Assembly (NCBI GenBank): GCA_020536535.1
Contig: JAHLWZ010000346.1
Span: 1 to 64,000, forward strand
DNA from: Pelomyxa schiedti
Taxonomy: Eukaryota > Protista > Evosea
DNA: 64,000 bases
Reading direction: 5' to 3'
In this document: positions 6,466-36,002 of the stretch, piece by piece
Position numbering within the stretch: position 1 is the first letter of the stretch
Layout of the letters: each line of letters starts with the position of its first letter
Made by a program: the position numbers and the translations under genes
The notes under the pieces: model-generated
The model's database searches: none
What the model was told of the DNA's origin: nothing
What the model saw: only the letters and a program-made list of their open reading frames with translations

Positions 6466-6929
6466 ATGCAGGTCAGAATGAACATCCGCATCACGATGAG
6501 GGTCATGAACGGCTGTGGGGACTCTGTTCGAGATGGAATGAAGCGCTCTCTGATGGACTCACTCTACAAGCAGTCCGGTGGAAACATCGAGTCCGAGATG
6601 GGCGGCTGCGGCTTCAGGGAGAGCTTTCCCAACAACGGTTGGTCCGGGTTTGACTACATCATTAACGCTCCAATTGTGGTCAATGTCGAGTATGTTTCCC
6701 TTGACTTTAGCACCATTAACCAATTACCTTCAGCCGACTTGTGAAAAACACTGTGCCTGGCCCTTTTGCCCATTTCGGCTCCAAGTTCTTGTCCAATGTA
6801 ACAGGCTATGACCCAGTAGCGAAAATAATTCGGTCCCAGCTGGATGCAGCAATCAGACAGAACCTTGCCGAAGCTGACTGGACTGGCTTTGGTGCCAGTC
6901 TCAATGGGGTTGAGGTTACTCTTCGATGA
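6466..6929 (+). CDS. Small hypothetical protein (about 140 aa, 2 exons)
   Basis: ORF from ATG 6466 joins, via intron GA|GTATGT...CTTCAG|C, the frame RLVKNTVPGPF...GVEVTLR*. No family recognised. Confidence 0.6.
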
Positions 6930-7034
6930 AAATCCTGATATGCTGCTTGGGCCCTCCAGAAAGTTGTTTAAAGAAAGAAAAAAAAATCCCCATTTGCTGG
7001 CATTCCGTAGTACTTTGTTTTGCCGACGCGGGAA

Positions 7035-9423
7035 ATGAGCAACGAACAGCAACAAACACAGGCACAACAACCCCAACAGGCGCAGCAGATGGCGCGACAG
7101 GGTGTTACTGATGTAGCGCGCAAGGAGATGCTAAAGCAACTGCTGTGCGTGTGTGTGGGATGGACTTCGTGATGATGACATTTCTCTTTCCTCCCCTCCT
7201 CCTCCTTCCCGTCGCCCGCACCCCCGCTGTTTTTCCCTCTTTCCTCCTTTTTCTCTATCAACACGCGCACACACAGGCCACCACATCCAGATACGACGGT
7301 GACGGAGGTGCTTAAATTACTCGAAGTTGAAACTGCGAGGGCACACACGAACAACTTGGTGTGTATGTGTTGGCTAGTGTAATAGCCGCGCTTTGTGTGT
7401 GTGTGTGTGTGTGTTAATCCCATCACATTCAATTATTCAGTCTTTCAATCAGGATCACCCAACATTACATCGCACGCATTGTCGCTCCCCAAATAACCTT
7501 GGCGGAGTGTAAGTTTGAGAATCTAACACAACCTTCTTTTGATTGAGTGCAGGCGGCGTATCGGATTGCAATCTCGAATTCTCTCGAGGAGGCGTTGAGG
7601 AATCCAAACCACCAGAAGAATGCCGCTCTGAGTCTTCACACGCAACACTTTGAGCGCCAGATCGGCAACCTGCGGCAGTCAGCTCCTCAGAATACTGTGC
7701 TGCCGCCTCAGCAACTATTGACACAAAGGCCACAACCACTCTTACAAGGCAATCAACAACTTCAAGCGCCACAACAAATGCCACAAGCGTCATCACAGCA
7801 ACCACAACAAATGCAACAATTTACTGCAAACTTCATGCCAAAAATGCCTGCCAAGCCACAGGTTCTTCAGCAGCACGGAATGCCACAAGGTCCTCAGGTT
7901 CAACAGTCCATTTCACTTCAACCACAGATAGTATACATACAACCCCCCCAACAGCAGCAGCAATCATTAACTTCAAATGCCCCTGTTGGGAATATCAACA
8001 TCAACAACCCACAGTTAAACTCTCAGGCAAAATTTGTGGATTTAACCCCAGACGAATTTCCCAATAACCAACGAATTCCCCCGCAGCAAACACAACAACT
8101 GCAAGCCCAGTTACAGCAAGTCCCACAACAGCTGCAAGCATCTCAGTATCAGACAGCATTATCAGCACAACACCCGACAAGACAGTCGCCGGCACCCTCC
8201 CAAGTTGCACCACAATCCGCTCAAATGAGACCACAGAATATGGCACTTCCACAGCAGGCCCAACTTTTACAGTTGCAGCAGCAGCAGTTGCGGCACTATC
8301 AACAAATCCAATTGCAACAGCAACACATGCAGCCGCAACAACACCTGACCCAGCAGCAGGCACAGAATCAGCTGGGCGCCAATGCACGGTACGGCACACA
8401 GCCGATTTCTATTCCTCCCAACTCCACTCAACTTCAAGCCAGTGGTACCACACCTCCAATGTACATGCAACAGCAGCAAACAGCCCTCCCTCAGCAACCT
8501 CAGCTGCAACCACCTCAAGAAATACCATCTCAGGCCTTCCCACCGCAAATGTCAGTCAATGCACAACTTGCTCTTCAAACACAAACGCAATCTCATCAAT
8601 TGGGCAAATTAATGCCACAATTTCCTCCACAAACTCAACTTCCACTGGTGCAAACAAACACACCGCAAAAGGTGCCCCTAATTCCAGGACAATCACAGCA
8701 ACCCCAGAGAGTGTATGCTTACCCGTACCCGCCCTCACAAGGCGTGCCAAATATGCCCCAATTTCATCAACAGGCACAATTTACACACCAGCCGCAGACC
8801 TCAACCCAGTTGCAACAAGTGGGAGTCACTCACGTGATACGAAACACACCACTCGAAGCACCACCTGCAGCAACCCCCAATACCGCCACCATTGGGAACC
8901 TGTCAGGAATATTCGCCAGTCAGACAGGGCCCTCCGGCCCCCATGCGGCTGTCAAGAATTCTCCGGACTTCATGAGCACATCAATGGCGGACTCAGGGCC
9001 AGTAATGGTAACATCAACCGTGACAACGGCACCACCACCGCCAACACAACAGGCTCTTGTCATGATGTCACAAAACACGTCACTCCAACAAGCACCGGCA
9101 CCTATGAACTTCGATTCTCCCGAACTCACCAGTGCCAGTGGACCCGTATCTCGCCTTTCCGAACTCCTCACATCCTCTCAAGATGGTATTACTCCATTAT
9201 TCCCTGGTGATAAACTAACTTTGCAAATGTTACAGAGAAGCAAGAAGCGCAGAAGCTGGAATCGTTTACCCAGAAACTCGAGGTGATCACCCAAACATTT
9301 ACCCCGAGCTACCAAGAATACAAATACGGATGCTCTAAGTGCCTTCAAGAATTCGAAAAGCACTTCGCGCTCGCCAAGACCGCAAGCACAACGCACGACC
9401 CAGCCTCGATGCCCGTGGACTGA
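7035..9423 (+). CDS. Q/P-rich low-complexity protein (possible transcriptional co-regulator)
   Basis: ATG 7035 (MSNEQQQ), short 5' exons, and a 579-aa Q/P-rich ORF (7547-9286). A spliced last exon EKQEAQKLESF...MPVD* ends at 9423. Function is inferred from composition only. Confidence 0.7.
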
Positions 9424-12467: not shown

Positions 12468-15400
12468 ATGAACAAGCCAGCACGTAGTAGCAGCGCCGAC
12501 ATCAATGCACGGCATCAGCAACAACCGAAAAACAACCAACACAAACGACAACAGCAACAGCAGCAGCAACAAAATCGCCAACAACAACAGCAACAGCAAC
12601 AACAACGTGAGCAGATCGCATCCCCAGCGCCGGCAAAGAAGCACAAGGCGCCGGGGCCCGCCCCAGCGACAAGCGCGACGAGGGGCGCGGGGGCGGCTGC
12701 TACTGCGGCTACGACGGCACCAAGCGTAGCGGCTGCTACGACGACGACGACGACTACTACTACGACGACGACGACTACGGCGCCGGCGGCTGTACCCAGC
12801 TCGAGCTCGGGCAGCGCGGCTGCGATGGGGCGAGGCGGGGGCGGAGGGGGAGGGAGCGGCGGAGCGACGGCCAGCGGGGCGACGGGCAGGGCACCGAGCG
12901 CGAGTGCCAGCGCGAGCGCGACGGCGACTCCAGGGACAAGCGCGAGCAGCGGCAACGGGGGTGGTGGTGGTGGTGGAAGAGGAGGAGGAGGAGGCGGCAA
13001 TAACGTGCCTGTGGGAAACAAGGCGGGAGCTCAGGGCGGGGTAGGAAGAGGGGGCGGCGTGAGGCCCCCCGGTCGGGCAAGGGGAGTTCCACCTACATGC
13101 AACTGCAGTGAATGTGGTGTGTGACATTTATCACCCTTTTTCTTTTTCCTTTTCCTTCCCCCCCCCCCCCCTTTTCTTCCCCTCAGTGTTGACCTTTATT
13201 CTAATCCCTGCCGTTTCTTTCACACACTATCTTTTTCGTTTGGTTTAGTTGCAGCAAGTAGAGAATATGACAGAAGCTTGATAGCTATTGACAAACTCGA
13301 TCGAAACGGCTTCACTTCTACTGTGCCACCTTCAGGAAGAGCAAATAACAGAAGCAGGAGTAGTAGCCAGAGTAGAATTACTATTGGCGTTAGTGTGGAG
13401 GGGGACAGCGACTATTTAAGTGGAAGCAATAGTTGTGAGACTGCTGAGGACACAGATGCATATGACGACTCCAATGAGAGCGAGGGTTGTCCTGCTTCTG
13501 AGACTACATGCCGCGAATTTACACGAGTGTGGTCAGCGTTACAAGGTTTCCTGGTCAACTTACACTATTTTGGACTTACACGGGGTGAAGAAATGCTTAA
13601 GAACGGAGGAGAAGACTTTGCACGGCAATTTTTGAACAGGCACAAGGAAGCTCCTCAAACTTGTGTATGTCTATGTTAAACCTCTCAATATGTCTGTTGA
13701 TGACCTTTTTTTGTATTGGATGTATCGTTTTGCGTTCGTCTAATGAACAGGGTAATTATCAATAATGTTAACATTGGTTATGGCAGCAAAACGGTTGCAT
13801 GTGCCCCACACGAGCCCAGTGGCAAATTCAGTGTTCTGCTGCCGTTCCAACACAGTACCCTCAGTACCGTAAGTGTGAACGGACACAATACAGTGAGTGC
13901 AAAGCCAATAACAGTAACTGCGGAGGAACGACTTCCACCGCTAGGACATCTGGTGGTGGGGGTGGTAGTGAATCAAATGCTTCTGTGGACATGTCATCTG
14001 GTTTCATTGTCGTCCCTGGAAGCATTGAAGAGGCAAAAAAACTATCAAGAGAGAAAAAATTTGCTCTCAAAGTACCAGCTTGTTGTGGCCCACTTCCCTC
14101 ACATGCATCACCTGTAACCAACAAACCTTCATCAACTCCTATTCTGTCTCGCACCATAACAAAAGCTTGCACTTCCGAGATGAGACCCCAAGCCCATTCT
14201 CCTGTGGTCATTCCAGATGACGAAGGATACTGGTTGGAACTACAAAATCTTGTTGGCAGTATTTTCAAAGACCCAACGTGCCCTACCACAAGGGAACAAC
14301 TGGAAAGAGGGTACCAACGTTGTCAAAATTCTAAACAAACCTCACATGTCTCTCGTTCTTCACAGGCTGATTTGCACATGTAAACTATGTAACATCAATC
14401 CTGTATCTCTATTTTTGAAATTGGAGAACAAAGCAGTTTCCTGGATGCAACATCTAAGATCGCACCTGGTTCAATTTATTTCATCCTCAGCCCCGCTCAT
14501 GAGCCAATGTTAGCTTCCATATCTCTTTCATACACATTTAACATGATAAAAAGCCAACGCAACTGACTTTGTCACCCTTGTTGGGGCCTCATTTGAGAGC
14601 ATTACAAAAGCGAGCCAAGTACTGGATCCTGTTCTGGAGCCCCTTTATACACATTTTCTAATTCAGTTCAACATCAATTTTGGCGATGTGATAAAGGTAC
14701 AAAACCGTTCTATCTTATCAACTTAAACGAAATAGGGTTTGTTCCATCATATCGTTTTTGATGATGCTATCGTGCAAACTGTATTACCTCAAGTAAAATC
14801 CCTTCTAGGGGATGGTAGCACTACAAAACAGTCCACAAGTTCTCCTGCACCAGCCTCAGATACTCCGCATATTCCTGTGCAAAACCCAAAGGAATCCTCA
14901 CACCAACCAGTACCTACAACTTCTTCAGTACCCACATTGCCCGTAGAGTGCAACCGCTATTGTCACATATTTGATGGCATCGTCAGTAGTGCCCTTAAGT
15001 GCGCTATTTTATTTTATTTTATTTTTTTTTTTTTTTTAAGAATTACCTATTATTTTAATTTTTTTACTTAGGTGGACATCTAACAAAGAGGTGCTACAGC
15101 GGTATCTTGCCCAGCATCAAGTACACCACATATATTATTGAAAATTTGCAATCAATACTAACTCAACCTCTATTAGCACACAGTACATAAAACTGTTCCA
15201 TCTCCGCCGTCATGTAAGCATTTACGGCAACATCATCAACAAATTCCAGCTGAACTTCCTCACTCTCACAACCACTCTATTATCCATACACATCATCAAC
15301 CCTCTTCCCCAAAGCAAGGGCAGCAGTCACAAGCACAGCAGTTGCAAGTGCAACAATCGCAATGTAGTACATTACCACAAGAAACAGCACAGCAGAGTAA

Positions 15401-25145: not shown

Positions 25146-28100
25146 CTATTGCCAGATGAGAAGGGTGGTGGAGCCTTCACCAACAGAGGCCCATATTGTA
25201 ACTGGGTTGGTGCAAACCAGTCCAGCTGTTTCGGCCACCACAAAAGTGTGCAGTGGTCTGTTTCTGTGTGAATTGGGGTTTGTTGGAGTTGGCGTTGGTG
25301 TTTGTGTTGTTTGTGGTGATTGCAGTTGGTTCGTTGTGGTTGGTGCAGTAGAAGACAAATCCGGATGTGTAAGAACGGTTTCCGTGTTAGGTGGTTGTAC
25401 TGCCGGCCTGTTTGGGGTGAGAACTTGCAAGCACTTGGGATCCTTCCTGTTCCACACAAGGAGTTTTCCATCCTGCTGTAGTGCTATTACAAAGTCAGAC
25501 AGTGTGCGCACTGCCACAATGGAGTTGGTTTGTTGGGCTGGACCGGTTTTAATAGAACCCACAGAGCCTTGCGTCGTTGTACCACTGCTAATCACCGCTG
25601 TCGGGGTGTGGGGTTCTCCCAGCCTTTCAAAGCATTGAACAGCCACACCAGTGTTGATATCCAGCGAAATGAGAGAAGAGCCCTGAGCAACTAGAATAAA
25701 AGATTCTGACCACACATTGGCCATGCTAGTGACAGATTCACTTTGCAGGCGAATGACCCGTACCAGAGTGAGGTTATGTGCATCAAACACGATTATAAGG
25801 CCCGAACTAGTGCCTATCCACAATTCATTACAGTGTTGGGTTGCGCACGTAGCGATTCCATCAATCTGTGTTTTGATAGTGTCCTTTGAAGCGGAATCAC
25901 CAGACAGGAGAACAGCATGTGAGGTTGAAGATGTTACTGAAACCACAAGGGCCTTGGCATCTGTTGAGTTTTCAATGTGTACTGGCATTATGATTTGTAT
26001 GCGTGAAGATACCTTCTTTTTTTTTTCTGTAAGTTTACAAATAGATGAAATTAGGACACACAGTTCCGAGGAAACTGCAATCCCTCTTTGAAATTGTGTG
26101 TGAAAGGATATCAACGTCGTACAACTCGGAATTTTCAGACGAGCACAGGACAGAATGGCCCACCATCGTCATGCAGAAAATTGGTGTTTTATGTATAGTC
26201 ACAGAACAAGAGAAATCACTTGTATCTCGATAGATCAATATTTCTCCAGTACTGAGACCAACCCATATTTCACCTGTTCCGACTGATGCTATGCTACAAA
26301 CCTTTTTTTTGTGTTTAGCTGGAAGGAAGTACTTGAGGAAAATTTTTCACCATTTGTTCAACTGGTAACGTAGAGGAACTGAGACCAGAAAGAATGTCCA
26401 CTGAGATCTTTCTTTGAGTGCCTATTGGTTTGTTATTTGATTCATTGAAAATGTTAAGGAGGAAACCTATGAAATGGTGAATTTTAGGTGAACTGGATGT
26501 CCTCGTGATAGTGTTTGGGGAGGAAGATTTCAGCTCTCCATCATCCATTTCAAATGGAAGTGCTTCCTCTGTGGCCAGTGGACTGCTGCCTTGAACAGAC
26601 ATGCTAGACTCTGAAACGGGGGACACTTCTGCACTCGGAGTGGCGTTGCTAGGCATTTGAGGTGACGGTCTTCTCCTAGCGGCTTGCCTTGACATAGAAA
26701 ATAAGAAGGCAATTGAGAAAATGGGAAAACCATGACTTGCTTGGCACAGTGGGTGTTGGGACTGAAGTTCCACTTCTTGTGTAATTTTTCCAAAAGTAAA
26801 ATTGATACTTCTTACTTGTCACGGAGGCTGGAGGATTCTGGATCTGGTGAAACCACATTCAGGTCAGATGGGTCCATGGTTTCAATGTAAAGACAGGCCG
26901 AAACTAGGTGTGTGTAAAAACAAAATCCTTCACCGATGCGCTCTTCCATGTCAGCAAACCTACTTACAAACGTGACAATTAGTTAGGGAGCAACTCTTAA
27001 GATGGTAGGTGACGGTTTGTTTTGGATATGATGTATTTGAAATAACTCGTGAGAGATTGGCTTGAATGACAATATAGATAAAGAGCGGTAAAAAGTCGTC
27101 AGCACCAGCTGAACTTCCAGAGGTCTGCAAGGCATCTATTTGAGTGACAGTAATGCCAAGTGAGATGCTCATCGCTTAAGAAAGTAGGAAATGACAGTAC
27201 ATATAACAACTTTGCATGCTTTTAAAATACATGCTATTTTCTCGTAAGGTGTATAAACCTTGTCCATAGCTTCCAGCTCTGGAAGTGATTGAGTGCATAT
27301 CATTTTTAAGGGAGATACCTTCAATAGACGAGCGAATCAAGCTTGCATCTATTGGAATTTTAATTTCCATTGTGCTAAGAGTCACAACTGGCTTCAGTCT
27401 TGCAACTTGTTGTTGGAATTTGTTGTCCTTTTCTTGAAAAGCTCTTTTGAAAAAAATACTTGGTAAAGTGAGGAGACAGCCGATTCAAATGGAGGTGAAA
27501 ACCAGTTATATAAGTGGCCAAAGACATATCGCTTCATGCTTGCCTTGGCTTTTACAAATTCGTTTGATGGCATAGTGCACCAGGGAGGCTTAATTTTCAT
27601 CGTATATTCAGCAGATGCCAAGAAGTCATTGAGTATTTTAGATTCATCATCCAACGGAAGCCTTTTAGTGCGTTTCTCAAATGTGCGAATGAACCTTTGT
27701 GTTATCAGAAAAGGTACATTATTTGAAGTGGTACATTTCAACAACAGCTTTTATCTCTTTGCACAACGGTGTTGTTAATATATGTGAAAATGAGTACTCG
27801 GGTAGCTCGTCAGTATTAGTCCAATATATTTCCTAAGTCTGTAAGAAATTGCTGGATTTTAATGAAATGCACCACCTACCTTATTTTTTGAAGGTTTCAC
27901 TTTTGACTTGTCATCTGGAATCTTCCTCTTTTTGGCTTTTGTAGACTTGTCATCCTGCTTTTGATATGATTAAAGATGACACTACCTGCGCATATTACTT
28001 TCTTATGCTTTGATTCTCTATCCCTGGTCTTTCCGTCAGCTCCTTCTTTCAATATTGATGGTATTGGAGGAGGATTTTTTGGAGGGGGAGGTATGATCAT

Positions 28101-29093
28101 GTTGGTTGTTTCAGTTTGTGCCCTCTTTGAGGGAGGTGCAGTCGGAGGTGATCCAGTACGAATCGGTGAGGGTACTGGAGGGGGTTCTGAGGGAGGGAGC
28201 ATGAGCTGAAATATTTGTGAATGTCCACTTGCCGGTATTTCCATAGAGGAAACGGATGTTTTGAGGGGCTCCTCAAACGGTACCTTGCTACGAGGGAGCA
28301 GTGGTGGCGGGGTGACAATAGATGGAGGTATTGGTGGAGGAGTAGACGGTGGTGGCATTAGGGATACAATTGCCGTTGGAGATTTTGGTGAACTACCAGG
28401 AGGGACAGATGGGGACATAGAAAGGTTTTTTGACCCAATATCCTGTGATACTGTAGGTTCAGGATCAGAGAGATCACCCCTGGAATGGACAAGCAGTAAC
28501 CGCCGTTCTTGTGATGTTGTTCGTGATAACTTTGGGGATGCAGTAATGAAGACACTCTAAGAACCGATGGATAAGTTAATTTTTTGTTGTTTAATGGAGG
28601 TATACCCGTCTATTGTTTGAATCCGGTCTAGGGCAACTAGTATCCACAAATTGGGGTGAAGAACAAGGTGCCTGATACCTTGCAAGGAGTAAGTACCCAA
28701 ACAGAGGTCCGAAAGAAAAAAAAAAAGAAGGTGACATACACTAGGCTCTGTGCGCGCTCAGCAGAATACATTGCCACAAAAGTCAACTTAGCGTTGTTTC
28801 TCACCAGTACCACAGGTCCAGCATGTGGTTGCCTATATGCACTGCCACAAAGTCTCTCCATCAAGTTGACCCACAAACGAGAATCCTCACCAACTGCCTT
28901 TATCCTCCTACATGTGCTGCACACAGCCAACAAATCTGATCCACCAATAAATAGGGATTTCAAGGCAAGGGGAAACAAAAAATTTTGCACCAATTGAAAA
29001 CAAGCAATATAAAACAACACAAGCAGTGGCCTTACCTCGAAGAGGAAGATACAAAAAGCACCTCACGAGCAAATCCGAAGACAATTTTTCCAT
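25146..29093 (-). CDS. F-box / Pro-rich / VPS9 (Rab5-family GEF) / C-terminal WD40-like beta-propeller protein
   Basis: N-terminal MEKLSSDLLVRCFLYLP..LLAVCSTCRRIKAVGEDSRLW (F-box), a PxxP-rich ORF at 27897-28418, the VPS9 signature GADDFLPLFIYIVIQAN, and propeller-like repeats GEIWVGLSTGEILIY and ELWIGTSSGLIIVFD. Confidence 0.75.
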
Positions 29094-29429
29094 AAGGACA
29101 GAGATCTCGTATCCTCAATGGTTTTCTCACGCCGTAAATGAAAAATACGCTCACAGCGTACGTGCCCCGGTACTGCCCGCGTATCTGAGTTTTTGTAATA
29201 GTGCTGCTTCTTGATTTCTGATTGTTTTCTTCTTCTGTTTTTTGGATCCCTGATGTTTTCTTCTTCTTTCGCTCGACAACGAAAATTCGGTGACAACACC
29301 CAAAAAAAGACAACGAGACGAAATTAAAGATACCGAAGCTACAATATTTTTTTTCACAGGGTTATAGCAAGTGATACAAACAACATAGTGGTGTTGCACT
29401 CTGGGAAGCCAGTCAATGTCATGAGCTCA

Positions 29430-32400
29430 TCAGGCACTCGTGGGCTTCGCGGAGGTGCCCTGATGCAATAAATCATCAAGCGAGACTGACAGAGCTACGC
29501 CGAGGGCAGAGAACGTGTGTGGGGATATTGACTTGGTGGCCAGTTGGTTCTGCAGCCGCGCGGAAAGCAGGCCCAAGAGGTACGAGTGCGTGGATAGCGG
29601 AATGGACGACGTGAGTGATTTCAGGAGCAGCGCGATTGCGGACGACGGTATGAGGTCGATGGAAGAAGCGCGAGTGAGTAGATAGTGTAAGACCGCGTGC
29701 TTGCCGCTTTCGTCGATGTTGAGTACGAGGTGAGACAGGAGGCTGTGGAGAAGTGGCTCCGTGCCTTGGAGCGAAGGAGCTTGCTGGTTGAGGATTGCTT
29801 CTGTTGTGTAGAGGCACACATCTGCGGAAAAGCCTGGTTGGCCTGTTGACAAGGACTTAACCATGTCAACCCATGCCTCAAGGGATTTATTCCTGAAGGG
29901 GCCTGGTGAAGATGCGATCGGGCATAGAGATTTACAAATGTTGAGTACTACTGTGCAATACTTTTCTTCGTTGTTCCCATAAGCGGACTTTAATATTTGC
30001 CCAGTGGATTTTAGCATTGTGGGAAAATGACTGCTTCCTGAATGGAAGGTATCACTAAGGGTGATAATTAATTCGGATTCCAGGAGTGGGGTGTAGCACT
30101 GGGGATATAGAGGAAGAAGCCTTTCTAGCATCAATAGTGCGCTTTCCTGAGAAATCAAATCCTTCCCTGCAAGGTCGCTAAGTAGTTCTTGGGTGATAAA
30201 CCTTTCTACTTCTTCGGCAGATAGCATGTGGCAGCGCACACAAGCAGCTGCAGCACGTGTCATAGGTCTCCCACTGTGATGCATTTCAATAACGTGTTGT
30301 CTTAGTTTTTGGAGAGTAAGCTTCCCGATTGAATTGTGGGGAAGCTGTAATAACTCTAGCATGAGCATCAAGGCCTGTGATTGTCGTTGGTCATCGAAAA
30401 TATTCAGACCAGTTTCAAGAGATATGGTAAGAGCACTACCCTTGGATGTGAATGGGGTGATGTACCCCAATAGAGCACAAAAGAGTTTTATCTCAAGTTG
30501 TTTGTTGACTAATGAACCACATTCATGTATAATTTCCGAAAGTGGGCCAAGAGGCTCGTTTAAAAGCGTATCAACAACTTGGTTGAGAAGAACTGAATTC
30601 ATTTGTGATTTGCTTCCTTTCACCACACTTGCAAGGGTACGAGAAAGGTGGGATCTTATGCTACTTGTTGTAGTGGTCTTGAACATATTGCGCAGTTTAC
30701 AAAGAATGTATTCGAGGACAGGGAGAGCACAGACCTCAGACACTTGTTGCAGCGCCCATTGAGCGAGACTCACATCTGGTGACTGTTTCTTGTGAGGAGT
30801 ACTCCAAATTCCAGTGCCTGGTATAAAAGAGAAAATCCAATGAAGAAAACGGACTGTCTCTGTTTTCCGCAAAGATTCGTCCGTTTGGAGAAATTTGAGA
30901 AGGGTTTTAGTGGTTTCCTTCGTTCCTGTAGGACCCATATTTCGTTCTCCAATGAGAAAGTGCAACGCACTAGTTCGTTCTTTATGAGACAAATCCAACT
31001 TCCTGTAAGCCTTGATTCCTGCCGAGAAAATAATGGCAGATGAAGAGCTCAAGGCATGTCTGTGCTCTTCCTTTGTAAGTGCGTTGGTAGATACGAGAAG
31101 TAGGATGGCCTGGGCAAGGAAATTTTCATTATTCAAGTCACAGTCATGAAGGGAGGTGTGCAGGGTCTTGGATATTTCCTCTTTGACAAGTGCCGGTTGC
31201 TGCTTCAGAATCTTTCGTGCCGTTGAGCCTTTACAAAGTCCACTGAAAAGGAGATCTTTAAAAATAGAACCCGTAATCAAGCTGGGATGTCCCCTCAAAA
31301 CGTTCATTAAAGTAAAACCAATTTCCTTCTGGTATGAATTGCCGGCTATTTGTTGTAGTAATTCTTTTTGCAACAGCGCACTGGCCATGGTGTGCAACGT
31401 TTTATATTTGAAGACTATTTCATCCAAATCCTTGTATGAAAGATGGCTGAACTGAAAAGTCTGTAGAACCGGCAAAAAGGACTGGTTTATGAGGTTACGG
31501 AAATCACCGTTGTTGCCATCAGAAAATAAAGATGTCAACATCTCTGTGTAGCGCTGCAGCCAAAACCCTACTGAGTTGAACTGGTAATGGTGCACTAATA
31601 TGGGGTTCAAAGCGGGAATAGAGCATTTGCTCAAATTTAGTGCATCACATTTGGAGATAAGAAATTTTTGAATTTTCGGGAAACCAGACCCACCAAGGGG
31701 AGCTTCCAAAATGAGTGTGCTTAGCTGGCAACAATTCTTAATCTCCAGTGCCATCAAATTGTCTCCAAGTGACAAAGAGAGTTCCCCAAGGCCCTGACAG
31801 TTGTTTACAAATAAAACTTGCAGGTGAGGCACTTGTGCCTGGAAATAGAGCATATCGCACCGATCTAAGCACAACGTATGCAAGTTACTGAACTTCAAAT
31901 CGAGGGCATGAATCTCACAGGAATATAGCCCTAGAGTAAGTAAATTTCCAGAGGATCTTTCTAGAAGATGTTCAAACAGGACACCGGAGGACTCCATTAC
32001 TCCATGCAAGGCAAGAGCAGAGAATGTATCTTTACTCTTAATGCATTCCTCAAAAACATCCTCCCCAAACTTCCCTAGTTGGGAAAAATTGAGGTGGGAG
32101 ATTACTTCTTGCCGGAGGGAGGAAGAAGCCCCAGTGAAAGAGTTTAGTTGCTTGTCTTGTTGCACTGTCGTAAGAATGTTTAGAAATTGCTGATATACCG
32201 GCCTATAGTTTGATATGATGCCATATAAGTAGTTAACATTGTTTGACTGGGTGCCAGAGCGGGATTCTGCCGCCATAGGAAGGAGACAAGAGCCGTGCTT
32301 TACATCAGGAAAAAATCCAGACCCAACAGATTTGAGTAATTCTTCATGTGTCCACTGTTTTGCAATTGGCAAATTCAAAAAATGTTGAAGGATAAGAAAT

Positions 32401-35400
32401 CTCTCCAGCAGTTGGATGACATCGGTCTGCAAGTCAGGTTCCCTGGTGAAGTGACCACCAACCAGCTGCTGAATATGTTGGACGTTTATCTGAACGGTTT
32501 TCAGCCAAGAAGAGAGTGTAAGATGTGGGTCTAACTCCAAGAAGGCGGTAACAGCGTGAAAATCGATTTTTTCCTTCATTTGCGGCATTTTTAGCAGAAC
32601 GCTGCTAATAGTGGAGCTTTCTTCATTGATGCCAGTACTATCAACAACGGGGAGCCAGCCATTCCCCGTGATAATATTGTCAAACGTATCACTCAGGGGG
32701 TGGAGTAGAAAGGATTCAATAACCCGCCACGTGAAGGTTTTTGGAGTTAAATCAGACTGATCAAGAGCCATTATCATTAAGGCGAGATAGGGGTCATTCG
32801 GCTTGTTGGGGTGAGTGATTTTCGTGAGAGTGCTTACTTGGGGATCACCACTAAGAAGGCACCGCAAGTCATCAAAATAGTAACGCCTGAATAGTTGGTT
32901 GGGAGGAGTAACACAGTAGGCTGCCACTTTGTTATTGTCCCGTAAAATTCTGCATGGAGTGTTTGAGGGTTTAAGAGACCCGTCTGCGTTAAATAAAACG
33001 GAGGCACAATCTTGCTTCAAGGGTGCAAGAACCAGTCGGCTCGAGTCATCTAACCACGAAATGCTAATACTTCCAAACTGAAGAGGAGACAGAGCACAAA
33101 ACGAATGGAGCTGGTTCTGCCACTGGGTGCGTATTGTTGTAGAAGGAATATGCTGTCCGCTTGAGCTGATAGGAATACTTTCAAGCCAGTAACGAATTTC
33201 AGGAGAACGTGATTGATGCAAAAACTCCTCTACGAGAATATTCCTATACCTCCAATCGAGCTTCCAGTAGAAGGTTTCGCAGAGAGAAGAACTGACTTCC
33301 TTAGTGGCAAATAGATCACACAAAGATGAAAAGGTCCTTTTTACCCACTCGTTGCTGGGAACAAATGAAGGTTCAGTAGAAACCAGCATAGAGTCGAGAA
33401 GAAGTTCAAGAGATAAGTAAGTGAGAGAAAGCCTACTAGAAAAGGGCACTCCAAGGGAAGAAACTTCAGGGTCAATTTGGTGAGCTTTTCTAAAGAAGAC
33501 CATTGCTTCATTTTTTCTTTGCGTGAAGTTGTAGCTGGACAGAGCTGTATTGAGGAATAATTCAGCATCAGGAAGATTTAGTTGGATTCCTAAGGCCATT
33601 TTATAGTGAAAAATGGCTTTTTCCCATTCAGAGGAAGAAAAGAAATTGTCTCCACGTGCTTTGAAGTATGAGTACATCTGAGCAGGAAGAATAGAGGTAG
33701 ATTGAAGCCCCTTCCCTTCATTGTCAACTTCTAAAAGGAGCTTCTCGATAGCTTGTGCAACTGCGCCAGTTTTATCCAGTTCCAATTGTTTACAACAGAC
33801 TTGGAACAGTTTAGAGAGGCTCGCTCGGTACCGAGCAGGATCCTTTGCAACCTGGAGCACAAAATGGAATTCATCCAAGGCTTGTAAAATAGGTAGTGGT
33901 GCACAGTCTTCTGTAAATTGGGCAGACCACTGCTTTGCTGTCGGGATACAAGTACTGCCATTGTCGCACACAGGAGTAGAGGTATTTGACTTGTAAAAAA
34001 TACAGAATTCAGGATATATTTGAGCATCTCCCAAACAGAACTCGTTGGAGGAAAAAGAGCTGTCGGGAACGAGCTTGGAAAAAGGCCCCCATGCAGAGTC
34101 GTACCCGGCAGGAATTTTATCATCCCATTTATGAGATTTCGTTTTGTCAACATAAACATTTCCCAGTACAACTCTGCAAAGAAGTACAGCTTTTAGAGCA
34201 TCGCAACTGCAATCATTCTGCAAACACTCGGGACACTGAACATATGTGGATACTTTGGAAAACGAGTCCGAACAGTAGATACCCTTGCCCAGGGCACCAT
34301 AACCAGTAAACCAGTTGTACTTGGAGAAATTCGCATTGAACCCCGTCTTGGTTATTTGTTTCATAGAGAGTTGGTTGGTACCATGTAGAAGCCAGCATTC
34401 ACCAATTTCTGCATTTAAAACTGGTAGTCCGTTTTCCAATGGGGCATGCCAACAAACGCCTGCAAGTGGTGTGGAAATGCCTCTCTCCTTCAGACTAGTT
34501 GCAATATTCCTTCGAGTTTCGTGGTATCTGGCCCAGAGGAGAGGATTATTGATAACTTTAATGTCATGGATGGTAACGCTTTCTGTCTTCCCTTGGTATT
34601 GAGGCGGACTCCATACTTCTTGATAGAGGAATTGAAGAAGTGATCCATGTTCTGCAGCTTTCTTCAATCTAGCAAACTCAAATGCACCAGATTGGAAAGT
34701 CTCAGTGTCACTGGTACTATGAATCAGTTGTACAAGAATTTCCCAGAGTTTGTCACTTTTCTTAACATTGCAAGTTGTGCCTGGGGGTGAAACCCAGTCA
34801 GGTTCCTCCATCCAATTTCCTTTCGGCAACGCGAGGCAGTCACAAGTATCAGCTTTTATCCACTGCTGAAGTGCATTCTCAATTGGTGGCTGATTTTCAA
34901 CTTTAATCTTGAATTCGGGATGGGGACCTGTTTAACGCAATAAGCAAAGGGGTGGGGGTTGTAGTCCCATACCAGCAACTGAACCGAAGCCACGTAGCTG
35001 CTCCAATGTGAAACCCCTCACCTCCAGTGGAGAAGAGTTCATGGCATCACACTTCAAGAAGTCTGTTCCACTTACAACAGCAGATTCCATACAAGCTCCT
35101 TTCAGGATTGCCAAATCCAAATGGGCTTCACATAGGTACGCACACTTAAAATCGGCTCCTTCACCACGTATATGAGACAAGTCAGCCTTCCACAGGTTAG
35201 AATAGTCGAAACTTGTGGAGTTCTTGATGATTGCCTCGGTGAATTTGGATTCTATCAGTGAGGCACCTGTGAAGTCGGTGTGGTCCAGAACAGCACGAGA
35301 CATGACAGTGCTGTCAAGACAGGAGTTGTTGAAATGTACCCCAAAAAGTTCAGCTTTTTCGAAAGAGCACCCACTTAGACAAACACCGGAGAAGTCGATA

Positions 35401-36002
35401 TTTTCAAGCTTAGCTCCGAAGAAATTGCTCAGAGAGAGCTCCACATAAACAGTTTCACTTAAAGCAGGGAAACCACTCAAACGCAGGACATCTTCGCCAC
35501 AAGTTATTGCGTTTGCATCCCCATCTCCATTCAATGAGCAAGCTCCAGTAGACACCAAAGACAGGCCAATCTTTCTCCACGCTTCATCCTGATCTCGCAA
35601 GCACAAAGTGAGCATTAAACTCAGCGCCCATTGCGACGTCCTCGCCATATCCACCAATTTGCGCCTATCACTTTCACTCAGTTTGGTAAATGACGTCACC
35701 TCCTCAATCGCGTCGCGCTTCCCACTTTCACCATCTCTCACCAAACATGTCTTGATCAAATCTGCACAAAACTTCTCATCGCCGGTGCACTCGTGGTGAG
35801 ACAGCCGCTCAAAAAACCGAGATCTAGACAGTGCGGCCTGCCTGTTTTTCCACAGTGGTTGATATCGTGCATCGTGAAGCCTGTTGTCGAAGTAACTACG
35901 TAACGGTGCGAAGTACTCCGCAACCAACGATTCGCCCTTTTTTTTTAAGCAAAAAAAAATTTAGCACAGAACAATCAGTGTAAGGAAAATCAGAGATACC
36001 AT
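29430..36002 (-). CDS. About 2154-aa pentapeptide-repeat + tankyrase-like PARP + TPR + kinase-like + LRR + HEAT/ARM protein (3 exons)
   Basis: ATG at 36002-36000 is followed directly by an intron (35999-35937). Exon 35936-34973 carries A(D/N)LxX pentapeptide repeats. A 45-nt phase-1 GT-AG intron (34972-34928) joins it in frame to the 1799-aa ORF. PARP motifs: LLHGT, GKGIYCSD..SKVSTY, CPECLQNDCSC, LLCRVVLG, SNEF...QIYPEFCIFY. Confidence 0.85.

Follow-up and report, generated by a model that had tools for sequence, protein, structure and literature searches.

Two long open reading frames (ORFs) lie one after the other on the minus strand of a stretch of DNA from the anaerobic amoeba Pelomyxa schiedti (positions 1 to 64,000 of contig JAHLWZ010000346.1, assembly GCA_020536535.1; this whole stretch of 64,000 nucleotides is called the window here), and they raise the questions of whether they form one gene, what protein that gene encodes and where it came from. 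A preliminary description, made from the sequence alone, had taken them for a single hidden gene encoding a giant ADP-ribosyltransferase and had suggested a role in innate immunity. We found that both ORFs belong to one nuclear P. schiedti gene of three exons, which is expressed. Its product is, in the reading that we consider likely, a multi-domain giant of the PARP superfamily that is of bacterial origin, has lost its kinase activity, has kept its PARP domain and has been duplicated in the amoeba.

The union of the two ORFs through a 45-nt phase-1 intron, as first proposed, is borne out by three agreeing lines: a spliced contig, a public protein and the arithmetic of the reading frames. The intron contains a TAA, and its excision joins the frames in phase 1 through a codon made of G 34973 and GT 34927-34926. 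Translation of the full three-exon model gave 2154 residues with zero internal stops, the length that had been anticipated. The DNA of the window was found in four public runs from a single sample (X1-X4). In run X4, a 2293-nt contig (depth 18) spans positions 33528-34925 and then 34971-35862; the gap is exactly 45 nt and, with the cut moved by +2, its ends are CT..AC, that is, GT..AG on the minus strand. The intron is retained in the long genomic contigs of runs X1-X3. We read X4 as one of the Smart-seq2 complementary DNA (cDNA) libraries made for P. schiedti because the intron is skipped, the depth ends by about 36007, a 3020-nt contig (depth 80) at the other end of the gene terminates near 29349, ~80 nt beyond the stop codon, and the contigs are short (at most 14 kb, whereas the longest contigs of the other three runs measure 53-104 kb). 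Such libraries exist for this species (PMC8887013). The end of the 3020-nt contig also means that the 3' untranslated region is at least ~80 nt long.

The genome was obtained by single-cell whole-genome amplification from a polyxenic culture (PMC8887013), and bacteria hold relatives of the gene, two circumstances that favor bacterial contamination or a chimeric assembly, if not two separate genes. We give this almost no credence and rejected it, as the intron is spliced out in the X4 contig, a spliceosomal intron being absent there from a cDNA-type molecule. Moreover, the gene and its flanks are contained in long genomic contigs of three runs, the paralogues described below lie on contigs of 144-154 kb with eukaryotic neighbors such as a formin FH2 gene, and the two ORFs are joined both by the public protein and by the frame arithmetic.

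The gene is not hidden, as had been supposed: NCBI already carries it, as a single gene whose N-terminus is truncated, under the name hypothetical protein Pelo_4303 [Pelomyxa schiedti] (P0001, 2057 aa, 100% identical), which includes the pentapeptide part and splices intron 2 in the same way as our model. By comparison with its relatives, the public start is placed too far downstream, leaving the N-terminus 97 residues short. The 93 codons of open frame on the 5' side of the public ATG are conserved with three paralogues and with the environmental relative P0005, whose contig (L001) belongs to the organism of a bacterial metagenome-assembled genome (MAG); model residues 2-97 align with these proteins at invariant P, L, PLW, R, A, and F positions, and in a tblastn search against L001 the alignment begins at model residue 2-3. 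The X4 contig likewise extends to 35862, 214 nt 5' of the annotated ATG. The open frame 5' of residue 98 has no ATG of its own and is bounded by a TAA at 35963-35961, which places the start in an upstream exon. A coding exon 1 that consists of the ATG only, followed by a 63-nt intron 1, is a well-supported prediction: an in-frame TAA at 36044-36042 lies upstream of the predicted ATG, and the sole introns of the paralogues Pelo_10512 and Pelo_10683 (P0002 and P0003), phase-0 introns of 71 and 52 nt, sit at the position homologous to that of intron 1, five residues ahead of an A-E-[FY]-F motif.

The public model of another paralogue, Pelo_16630 (L016 2001-9521), carries a low-complexity N-terminal extension of ~145 aa, with an intron of 42 nt following residue 88; since the relatives lack this extension, the start of this model may be wrongly annotated as well. 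Immediately 5' of it (L016 1-468) lies the gene of a further P. schiedti product, of 537 aa, with a PARP domain and a faint CBM_20 match.

The modules of the protein follow one another as an N-terminal domain, pentapeptide repeats, a PARP domain, a helical TPR-like region, a type II phosphatidylinositol 4-kinase (PI4K)-like domain, Cys-containing leucine-rich repeats (LRRs), and a HEAT-like solenoid (Table 1). From the pentapeptide repeats onward, this is the order first described.

The PARP domain matches Pfam PF00644 with an E value of 8e-11 (42.2 bits, cut-off 26.7). When the profile of the family was compared with the PDB, PARP4 and tankyrase-2 were the best matches (E about 3e-8), and PARP1 chains were also matched. 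The LHG, GIY, and NEF motifs fall on the catalytic H, Y, and E of tankyrase-2 in the profile alignment, and the CxxC-x4-CxC cluster aligns on the tankyrase-2 segment CPVHKDRSCYIC. Across the family, the Y, the E, and three of the Cys are invariant, and the H is found in 10 of 11 relatives. The H-Y-E triad that had been noticed is thus intact and conserved, as is the tankyrase-type Cys cluster, and the domain is apparently catalytically competent.

With tankyrases 1 and 2 (PARP5a/b), the protein shares the PARP domain with its H-Y-E triad and the Cys/His cluster between the second Tyr of the NAD site and the next strand, which in our family is a predicted zinc site. Unlike them, the window protein has no ankyrin clusters and no SAM domain by Pfam in either of its two pieces, and an assignment to the tankyrases was rejected on that ground. 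The family profile scores tankyrase-2 and PARP4 equally well, and the PARP clade nearest to the family is a Sel1-PARP group with bacterial and rotifer members, not the animal tankyrases.

The central kinase-like domain left no trace in sequence searches: Pfam gave no match to this region in 14 members of the family at E values up to 1, a PDB profile search with the region returned nothing by sequence, and a word-based homology search with residues 800-1240 recovered only the query protein, so that the domain was resolved by fold search alone. HRD and DFG motifs were likewise sought by regular expression, and none was found. An AlphaFold2 (AF2) model built on a 14-sequence alignment (A4) had a predicted local distance difference test score (pLDDT) of 83 and a predicted template-modeling score (pTM) of 0.85. 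VIA-align placed it closest to PI4KII-alpha (Z 14.6, about 250 residues aligned, 253 exactly) and PI4KII-beta (Z 14.4), followed by CotH (Z 11.7), PI4KIII-beta (Z 9.9), and VPS34 (Z about 9). In a fold search of the Swiss-Prot part of the AlphaFold Database, the top ten matches were all type II PI4Ks. Among the clusters of the same database, the first two matches were giant uncharacterized proteins, Q55A60 (E 1e-13, TM 0.64) and Q54KW5 (E 4e-12, TM 0.61), of 1890 and 1836 aa, respectively, one of which has a Rab GTPase domain; the next were PI3K/PI4K proteins. By their form, the two accessions may be those of Dictyostelium entries, the database result naming no organism.

The kinase-like nature of this region thus stands as a type II PI4-kinase-like fold, but its catalytic residues have been lost in the window protein. 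All 10 non-Pelomyxa sequences of A4 keep the strand Lys and the D-[ED]-K-x-[DN]-N loop, and D-x-[DN] is kept in nearly all of them, a set of features that they share with the type II PI4Ks (PI4K2A/B, plant PI4K-gamma) in addition to the fold. Their loop resembles the DRGNDNW loop of PI4KII-alpha, and these positions presumably correspond to the catalytic sites of PI4KII-alpha, a presumed equivalence rather than the product of a residue-level structural alignment. In all four Pelomyxa paralogues, the Asp and the Lys of the catalytic loop are replaced. The window protein has V995 in place of the ATP-binding Lys and S1068 and T1070 in place of the loop Asp and Lys; D1072, N1073, and D1085 are what is left of the motifs. 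Because of these replacements, the module is probably a pseudokinase in Pelomyxa. The family further differs from the type II PI4Ks in having no kinase match at the sequence level in Pfam or the PDB, and the window protein differs from them in its probable inactivity.

The pentapeptide repeats pass the Pfam threshold, with four stretches matching PF00805 (E 6.3e-18, 64.4 bits, cut-off 20.2). Repeats above the Pfam threshold are a feature in common with known pentapeptide proteins (Qnr/MfpA, HetL, and PipB/PipB2 of Salmonella), and in NCBIfam, the window protein shows a weak generic likeness to HetL, PipB2, Qnr, and MfpA, far under the cut-offs. It gives no sign of DNA mimicry, and its repeats are one module of a giant enzyme. 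The N-terminal domain ahead of them had no Pfam match and only weak matches in the ESM Atlas, which assigned no fold. In the TPR-like region, TPR_1 was matched at E 0.0088, under the Pfam threshold, and the relative P0013 has a TPR_16 match at E 1e-4; the region is all-helical in a low-confidence AF2 model, and the ESM Atlas gave a weak TPR/LRR lead for the middle part of the protein.

The LRR and HEAT assignments are less firmly supported. Three matches to LxxLxLxxCxxL, at residues 1338, 1358, and 1380, fall in a region of periodic strands with a pLDDT of about 80 in an AF2 model of P0001:553-1400, which was built on a four-sequence alignment, was poor overall (pLDDT 57), and was used only for the LRR periodicity. 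Pfam found no LRR in the window protein, and weak LRR matches were obtained from Pfam for the homologous ORF of L001. Foldseek returned weak and mixed matches for this model, F-box-type LRRs among them; clostridial glucosyltransferases also came up and were set aside as spurious. The HEAT-type matches of the window protein (E 0.04-0.05) are under the Pfam cut-offs. In the aligned region, the paralogues P0003 and P0004 pass the HEAT and Adaptin_N models, and the bacterial P0014 and P0017 pass HEAT_2. The nearest ESM Atlas clusters of the C-terminal part are ARM/HEAT families, a weak lead.

Table 1 Features of the PARP gene in the window (residue numbers are those of the three-exon model).
Feature	Position in the window	Strand	Basis or detail
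ORF	34932..35927	minus	Open reading frame
ORF	29430..34829	minus	Open reading frame
Exon 1, coding part (ATG only), predicted	36000..36002	minus	Sole in-frame ATG before the donor
Intron 1, 63 nt, GT..AG, phase 0, predicted	35937..35999	minus	Homologous paralogue introns
Exon 2 (conserved N-terminal domain and pentapeptide repeats)	34973..35936	minus	X4 contig, paralogue alignment
N-terminal domain, residues 2-165	35445..35936	minus	Conserved in all relatives
Public start ATG (Pelo_4303), here internal Met98	35646..35648	minus	P0001 starts MARTSQW, which is residue 98
Pentapeptide-repeat region, residues ~169-304	35028..35435	minus	Pfam PF00805
Intron 2, 45 nt, GT..AG, phase 1, verified	34928..34972	minus	Skipped in X4 contig, public splice
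Exon 3, 5498 nt, stop codon 29432-29430	29430..34927	minus	Frame translation
PARP catalytic domain with family-specific flanks, residues 386-733	33696..34739	minus	Pfam PF00644
PARP H504	34385-34383	minus	LHG
PARP Y540	34277-34275	minus	GIY
Cys554/557/562/564 cluster	34235-34203	minus	CxxC-x4-CxC
PARP E618	34043-34041	minus	NEF
Helical TPR-like region, residues 737-886	33237..33686	minus	Weak TPR match, helical model
Type II PI4-kinase-like domain, degenerate, residues 887-1202	32289..33236	minus	AF2 fold comparison
Cys-containing LRRs (less firmly supported), residues ~1293-1439	31578..32018	minus	Motif and AF2 strands
HEAT/ARM-like alpha-solenoid (less firmly supported), residues 1477-2154	29433..31466	minus	Relatives pass HEAT models

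A profile search of 1.84 billion representative proteins retrieved 46 proteins at E < 1e-30. At least 15 unnamed database proteins, several of them bacterial, have the same architecture; several relatives of 1700-3400 aa keep the same module order, and one of these (P0010) has a C-terminal OTU protease in addition. The C-terminal region is variable, with HEAT repeats in some relatives and WD40 in others. Pelomyxa itself has four paralogues, 28-29% identical over their full length, and among the strong matches of known source there was no named amoebozoan protein besides these.

To our knowledge, nearly all described PARP enzymes come from animals, plants, or a small number of fungi. The relatives found here are all unnamed, and full-text literature searches that combined pentapeptide and PARP returned nothing relevant, in agreement with the earlier impression that no characterized protein has this architecture. 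Two surveys of PARP evolution (PMC2964712, PMC4245714) mention no pentapeptide repeats in any PARP, and according to one of them, bacterial PARPs are mostly small WGR-PARP proteins. The proteins described here are an undescribed architectural family inside the known PARP superfamily, public but unnamed.

The genomic settings of the relatives are of two kinds. P0017/P0155 (L004) lies between ParE, LysR, FGGY-kinase, and OmpA genes. P0010 (L005) is followed 32 nt downstream by a U-box gene (14131-15237) and then by MlaA, RluD, BamD, CsrA, and HemN genes, with no run of Ns between P0010 and its neighbors; the best named relatives of this RluD are from Gammaproteobacteria MAGs. When species-representative genomes were scanned, a single 166-kb contig from an uncultured Gammaproteobacteria MAG turned out to carry three copies, and the MAG copy in L006 is an intact ORF of 2526 aa with C-terminal WD40 that adjoins SecB and an ankyrin gene. 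On two further contigs, a U-box gene or an LRR-ankyrin gene lies immediately 3' of the relative. The Sel1-PARP-Ras/Roc relative P0020 (1954 aa, L013 8001-13865) is on a bacterial contig with hemCDXY and pyruvate kinase genes and has WD40, RING, and IcsB-like genes as neighbors. P0278, by contrast with these bacterial settings, sits on a 136-kb contig of 24.7% GC with LINE-type reverse transcriptases, a eukaryotic-type galactosyltransferase, and a low ORF density, and thus in what reads as an AT-rich context of eukaryotic type; the contig that holds P0006 (L003) has 25.9% GC and a similarly low ORF density.

Two observations on these contigs may be recorded here. In the MAG and a sister contig, some copies of the gene are broken into consecutive ORFs in different frames (L001 1194-9967 and L008 1814-8920), and these are either pseudogenes or the result of long-read frameshift errors. 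On L011, a contig of presumed bacterial origin that is unrelated to L005, a U-box E3-ligase gene (6694-9234) is directly downstream of a PARP giant.

In a tree of the PARP region, the pentapeptide-PARP proteins formed one clade (87/87), whose sister is the Sel1-PARP clade; this second clade holds the bacterial P0020 as well as a bdelloid rotifer protein, from Adineta steineri. A larger tree (1301 columns from the N-terminus through the kinase-like domain), unrooted within the family, grouped the four Pelomyxa proteins together (95/95) with the bacterial P0010 as their sister (98/97). Forcing Pelomyxa and the AT-rich clade together was rejected by the approximately unbiased (AU) test (p 6.6e-8), for which the constrained group was chosen after the first tree had been seen. 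Since one common eukaryotic clade is thereby rejected, the gene must have passed between domains of life at least twice. By parsimony, a bacterial ancestry requires 2 changes and a eukaryotic ancestry 3-4. Introns are few in the Pelomyxa genes of the family (1-2 per gene of about 7 kb, each of 42-71 nt), and the mean of the P. schiedti genome is 7.43 introns per gene (PMC8887013). With fewer changes and so few introns, we lean towards the view that the gene moved from a bacterium into the amoeba.

The reverse would be that the family is ancestrally amoebozoan, that amoeba-associated Gammaproteobacteria repeatedly gained genes of it as host-mimicking effectors, and that the Pelomyxa genes were inherited vertically. 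We regard this as rather unlikely, though it deserves a hearing: the domain repertoire is typical of eukaryotes, bacterial PARPs are rare and acquired by transfer (PMC4245714), the kinase-like domain recurs in the giant proteins Q55A60 and Q54KW5, and a second eukaryotic clade, the AT-rich one, is present. It would require 3-4 transfers to bacteria against 2 to eukaryotes, and it fits poorly with 1-2 introns where the genome has 7.43 on average, with Pelomyxa being the only named amoebozoan among the strong matches of known source, and with a sister Sel1-PARP clade that holds a bacterial and a bdelloid rotifer protein. The P. schiedti symbiont paper mentions neither Gammaproteobacteria nor gene transfer nor effectors.

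Transfer from a bacterium followed by loss of the kinase, the account that we prefer, has several points to its disadvantage. The tree has no root within the family and a weak backbone, and the direction therefore comes from parsimony and intron poverty; just one bacterial sequence is sister to Pelomyxa, and the bacterial lineage is resolved to the level of Gammaproteobacteria. The domains themselves (a PARP with a tankyrase-like site, PI4KII-like, HEAT, WD40, U-box, and OTU) are of types usual in eukaryotes, in keeping with a source that is ultimately eukaryotic. The kinase fold was modeled on the relative P0013, to which the window protein is aligned in A4. As to the gene model, no cDNA-type contig covers intron 1, and in the X4 contig a single A is inserted after 35208 and again after 35446, both times within a short A/T run. 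If real, these insertions would shift the frame of the pentapeptide region; they are not found in the three genomic runs, and we suspect an amplification or assembly error in a single-cell library.

On the preferred account, the amoeba lineage would have received the gene from a bacterium, the gene would then have gained one or two tiny introns, and three duplications would have produced the four Pelomyxa paralogues, with kinase catalysis lost and ADP-ribosyltransferase retained. The PARP domain would then be the sole active enzyme and would ADP-ribosylate targets, the pentapeptide, TPR, LRR, and HEAT modules may recruit these targets or partners, and the dead kinase fold might serve as a binding or regulatory module. 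The U-box neighbors in bacteria and the OTU domain are hints of a link to ubiquitin signaling.

The SidE family of Legionella combines ADP-ribosyltransferase with deubiquitinase and has a mono-ADP-ribosyltransferase of the R-S-E type. A similar combination is seen in the bacterial relative P0010, which joins an ADP-ribosyltransferase with a C-terminal OTU protease, and in the setting of the bacterial relatives, which adjoin U-box, ankyrin, RING, and WD40 genes. The differences are that our family is an H-Y-E PARP and that the gene in the window is eukaryotic.

The preliminary description had gone further and proposed an innate-immunity, anti-endosymbiont, or antiviral sensor-effector, in which, much as in NLR proteins, the repeats would sense and the PARP would execute. 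We consider this improbable. It has in its favor a layout in which an enzyme is followed by long variable C-terminal repeats (HEAT, or WD40 in relatives), a lineage-specific expansion into four divergent paralogues, and the implication of PARPs in host-virus conflict, reportedly set out by Daugherty and colleagues in 2014. It is also favored by the permanent prokaryotic endosymbionts that Pelomyxa harbors (PMC10579272).

Several observations speak against it. A STAND NTPase or other P-loop NTPase is lacking: the Walker A motif G-x4-GK[ST] was absent from all four paralogues by regular expression, and no NTPase domain of Pfam was matched in the window protein or its paralogues. Neither piece of the window protein matched a PADLOC model of anti-phage defense, and Pfam gave no death-like or TIR-like adaptor. 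The nearest relatives lie beside bacterial U-box and ankyrin genes, which is typical of host-directed effectors, not of receptors; the nearest relative outside Pelomyxa is effector-like in this sense. The likeness to NLR/STAND receptors is therefore one of the C-terminal repeat region (LRR and HEAT-like solenoid, or WD40 in relatives), the central domain being kinase-like instead of a P-loop NTPase, and the immune proposal remains speculation.

A more elaborate possibility, which we hold to be quite speculative and improbable, is that the family consists of giant host-directed effectors of intracellular Gammaproteobacteria, combining PARP, PI4K-like, and ubiquitin enzymes, the last as a fused OTU or a neighboring U-box, and that one of them was captured by Pelomyxa, had its kinase inactivated but its transferase kept, and was multiplied to four copies that now act as decoy or guard sensors or as regulators of the symbiont membrane.

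In general layout, the family recalls the LRRK2/ROCO scaffolds, which also exceed ~2000 aa and embed enzymes among repeat solenoids (ARM/HEAT, LRR, WD40); in addition, WD40 takes the place of HEAT in some relatives, and a Ras/Roc domain is present in one PARP relative. The window protein differs from them in having neither a Roc-COR GTPase nor a protein-kinase domain, its enzyme being a PARP, and the likeness is one of layout, not of homology.

Other genes near the family members can be noted briefly. In the window, Pfam Beta-prop_LRRK2 (E 2.5e-8, over the cut-off) and further beta-propeller models match a 322-aa ORF on the minus strand (25146-26114), which may belong to a ROCO/LRRK-like gene lying 3 kb downstream of the PARP gene. 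Just 3' of the PARP gene, on the same strand (28637-29020), there is a sub-threshold F-box-like match (E 0.0024), and downstream of Pelo_10512 (L002 10449-11369), there is a weak ubiquitin-domain match. These two downstream neighbors may be a coincidence.

For P. schiedti, the analysis amends the public model of Pelo_4303, whose N-terminus gains 97 conserved residues. More broadly, it brings to light an unnamed giant family in which an apparently competent H-Y-E PARP is fused with a type II PI4-kinase-like domain and repeat solenoids, and which occurs both in uncultured Gammaproteobacteria that carry eukaryote-like genes and in at least two lineages of protists. It would be a case of inter-domain transfer into an amoeba with permanent endosymbionts and, at the same time, a natural experiment, in that one of the two enzymatic modules became inactive once the gene had been transferred. 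The family may also represent a candidate new type of effector, which would combine ADP-ribosylation, phosphoinositide-kinase-like chemistry, and ubiquitin enzymes.

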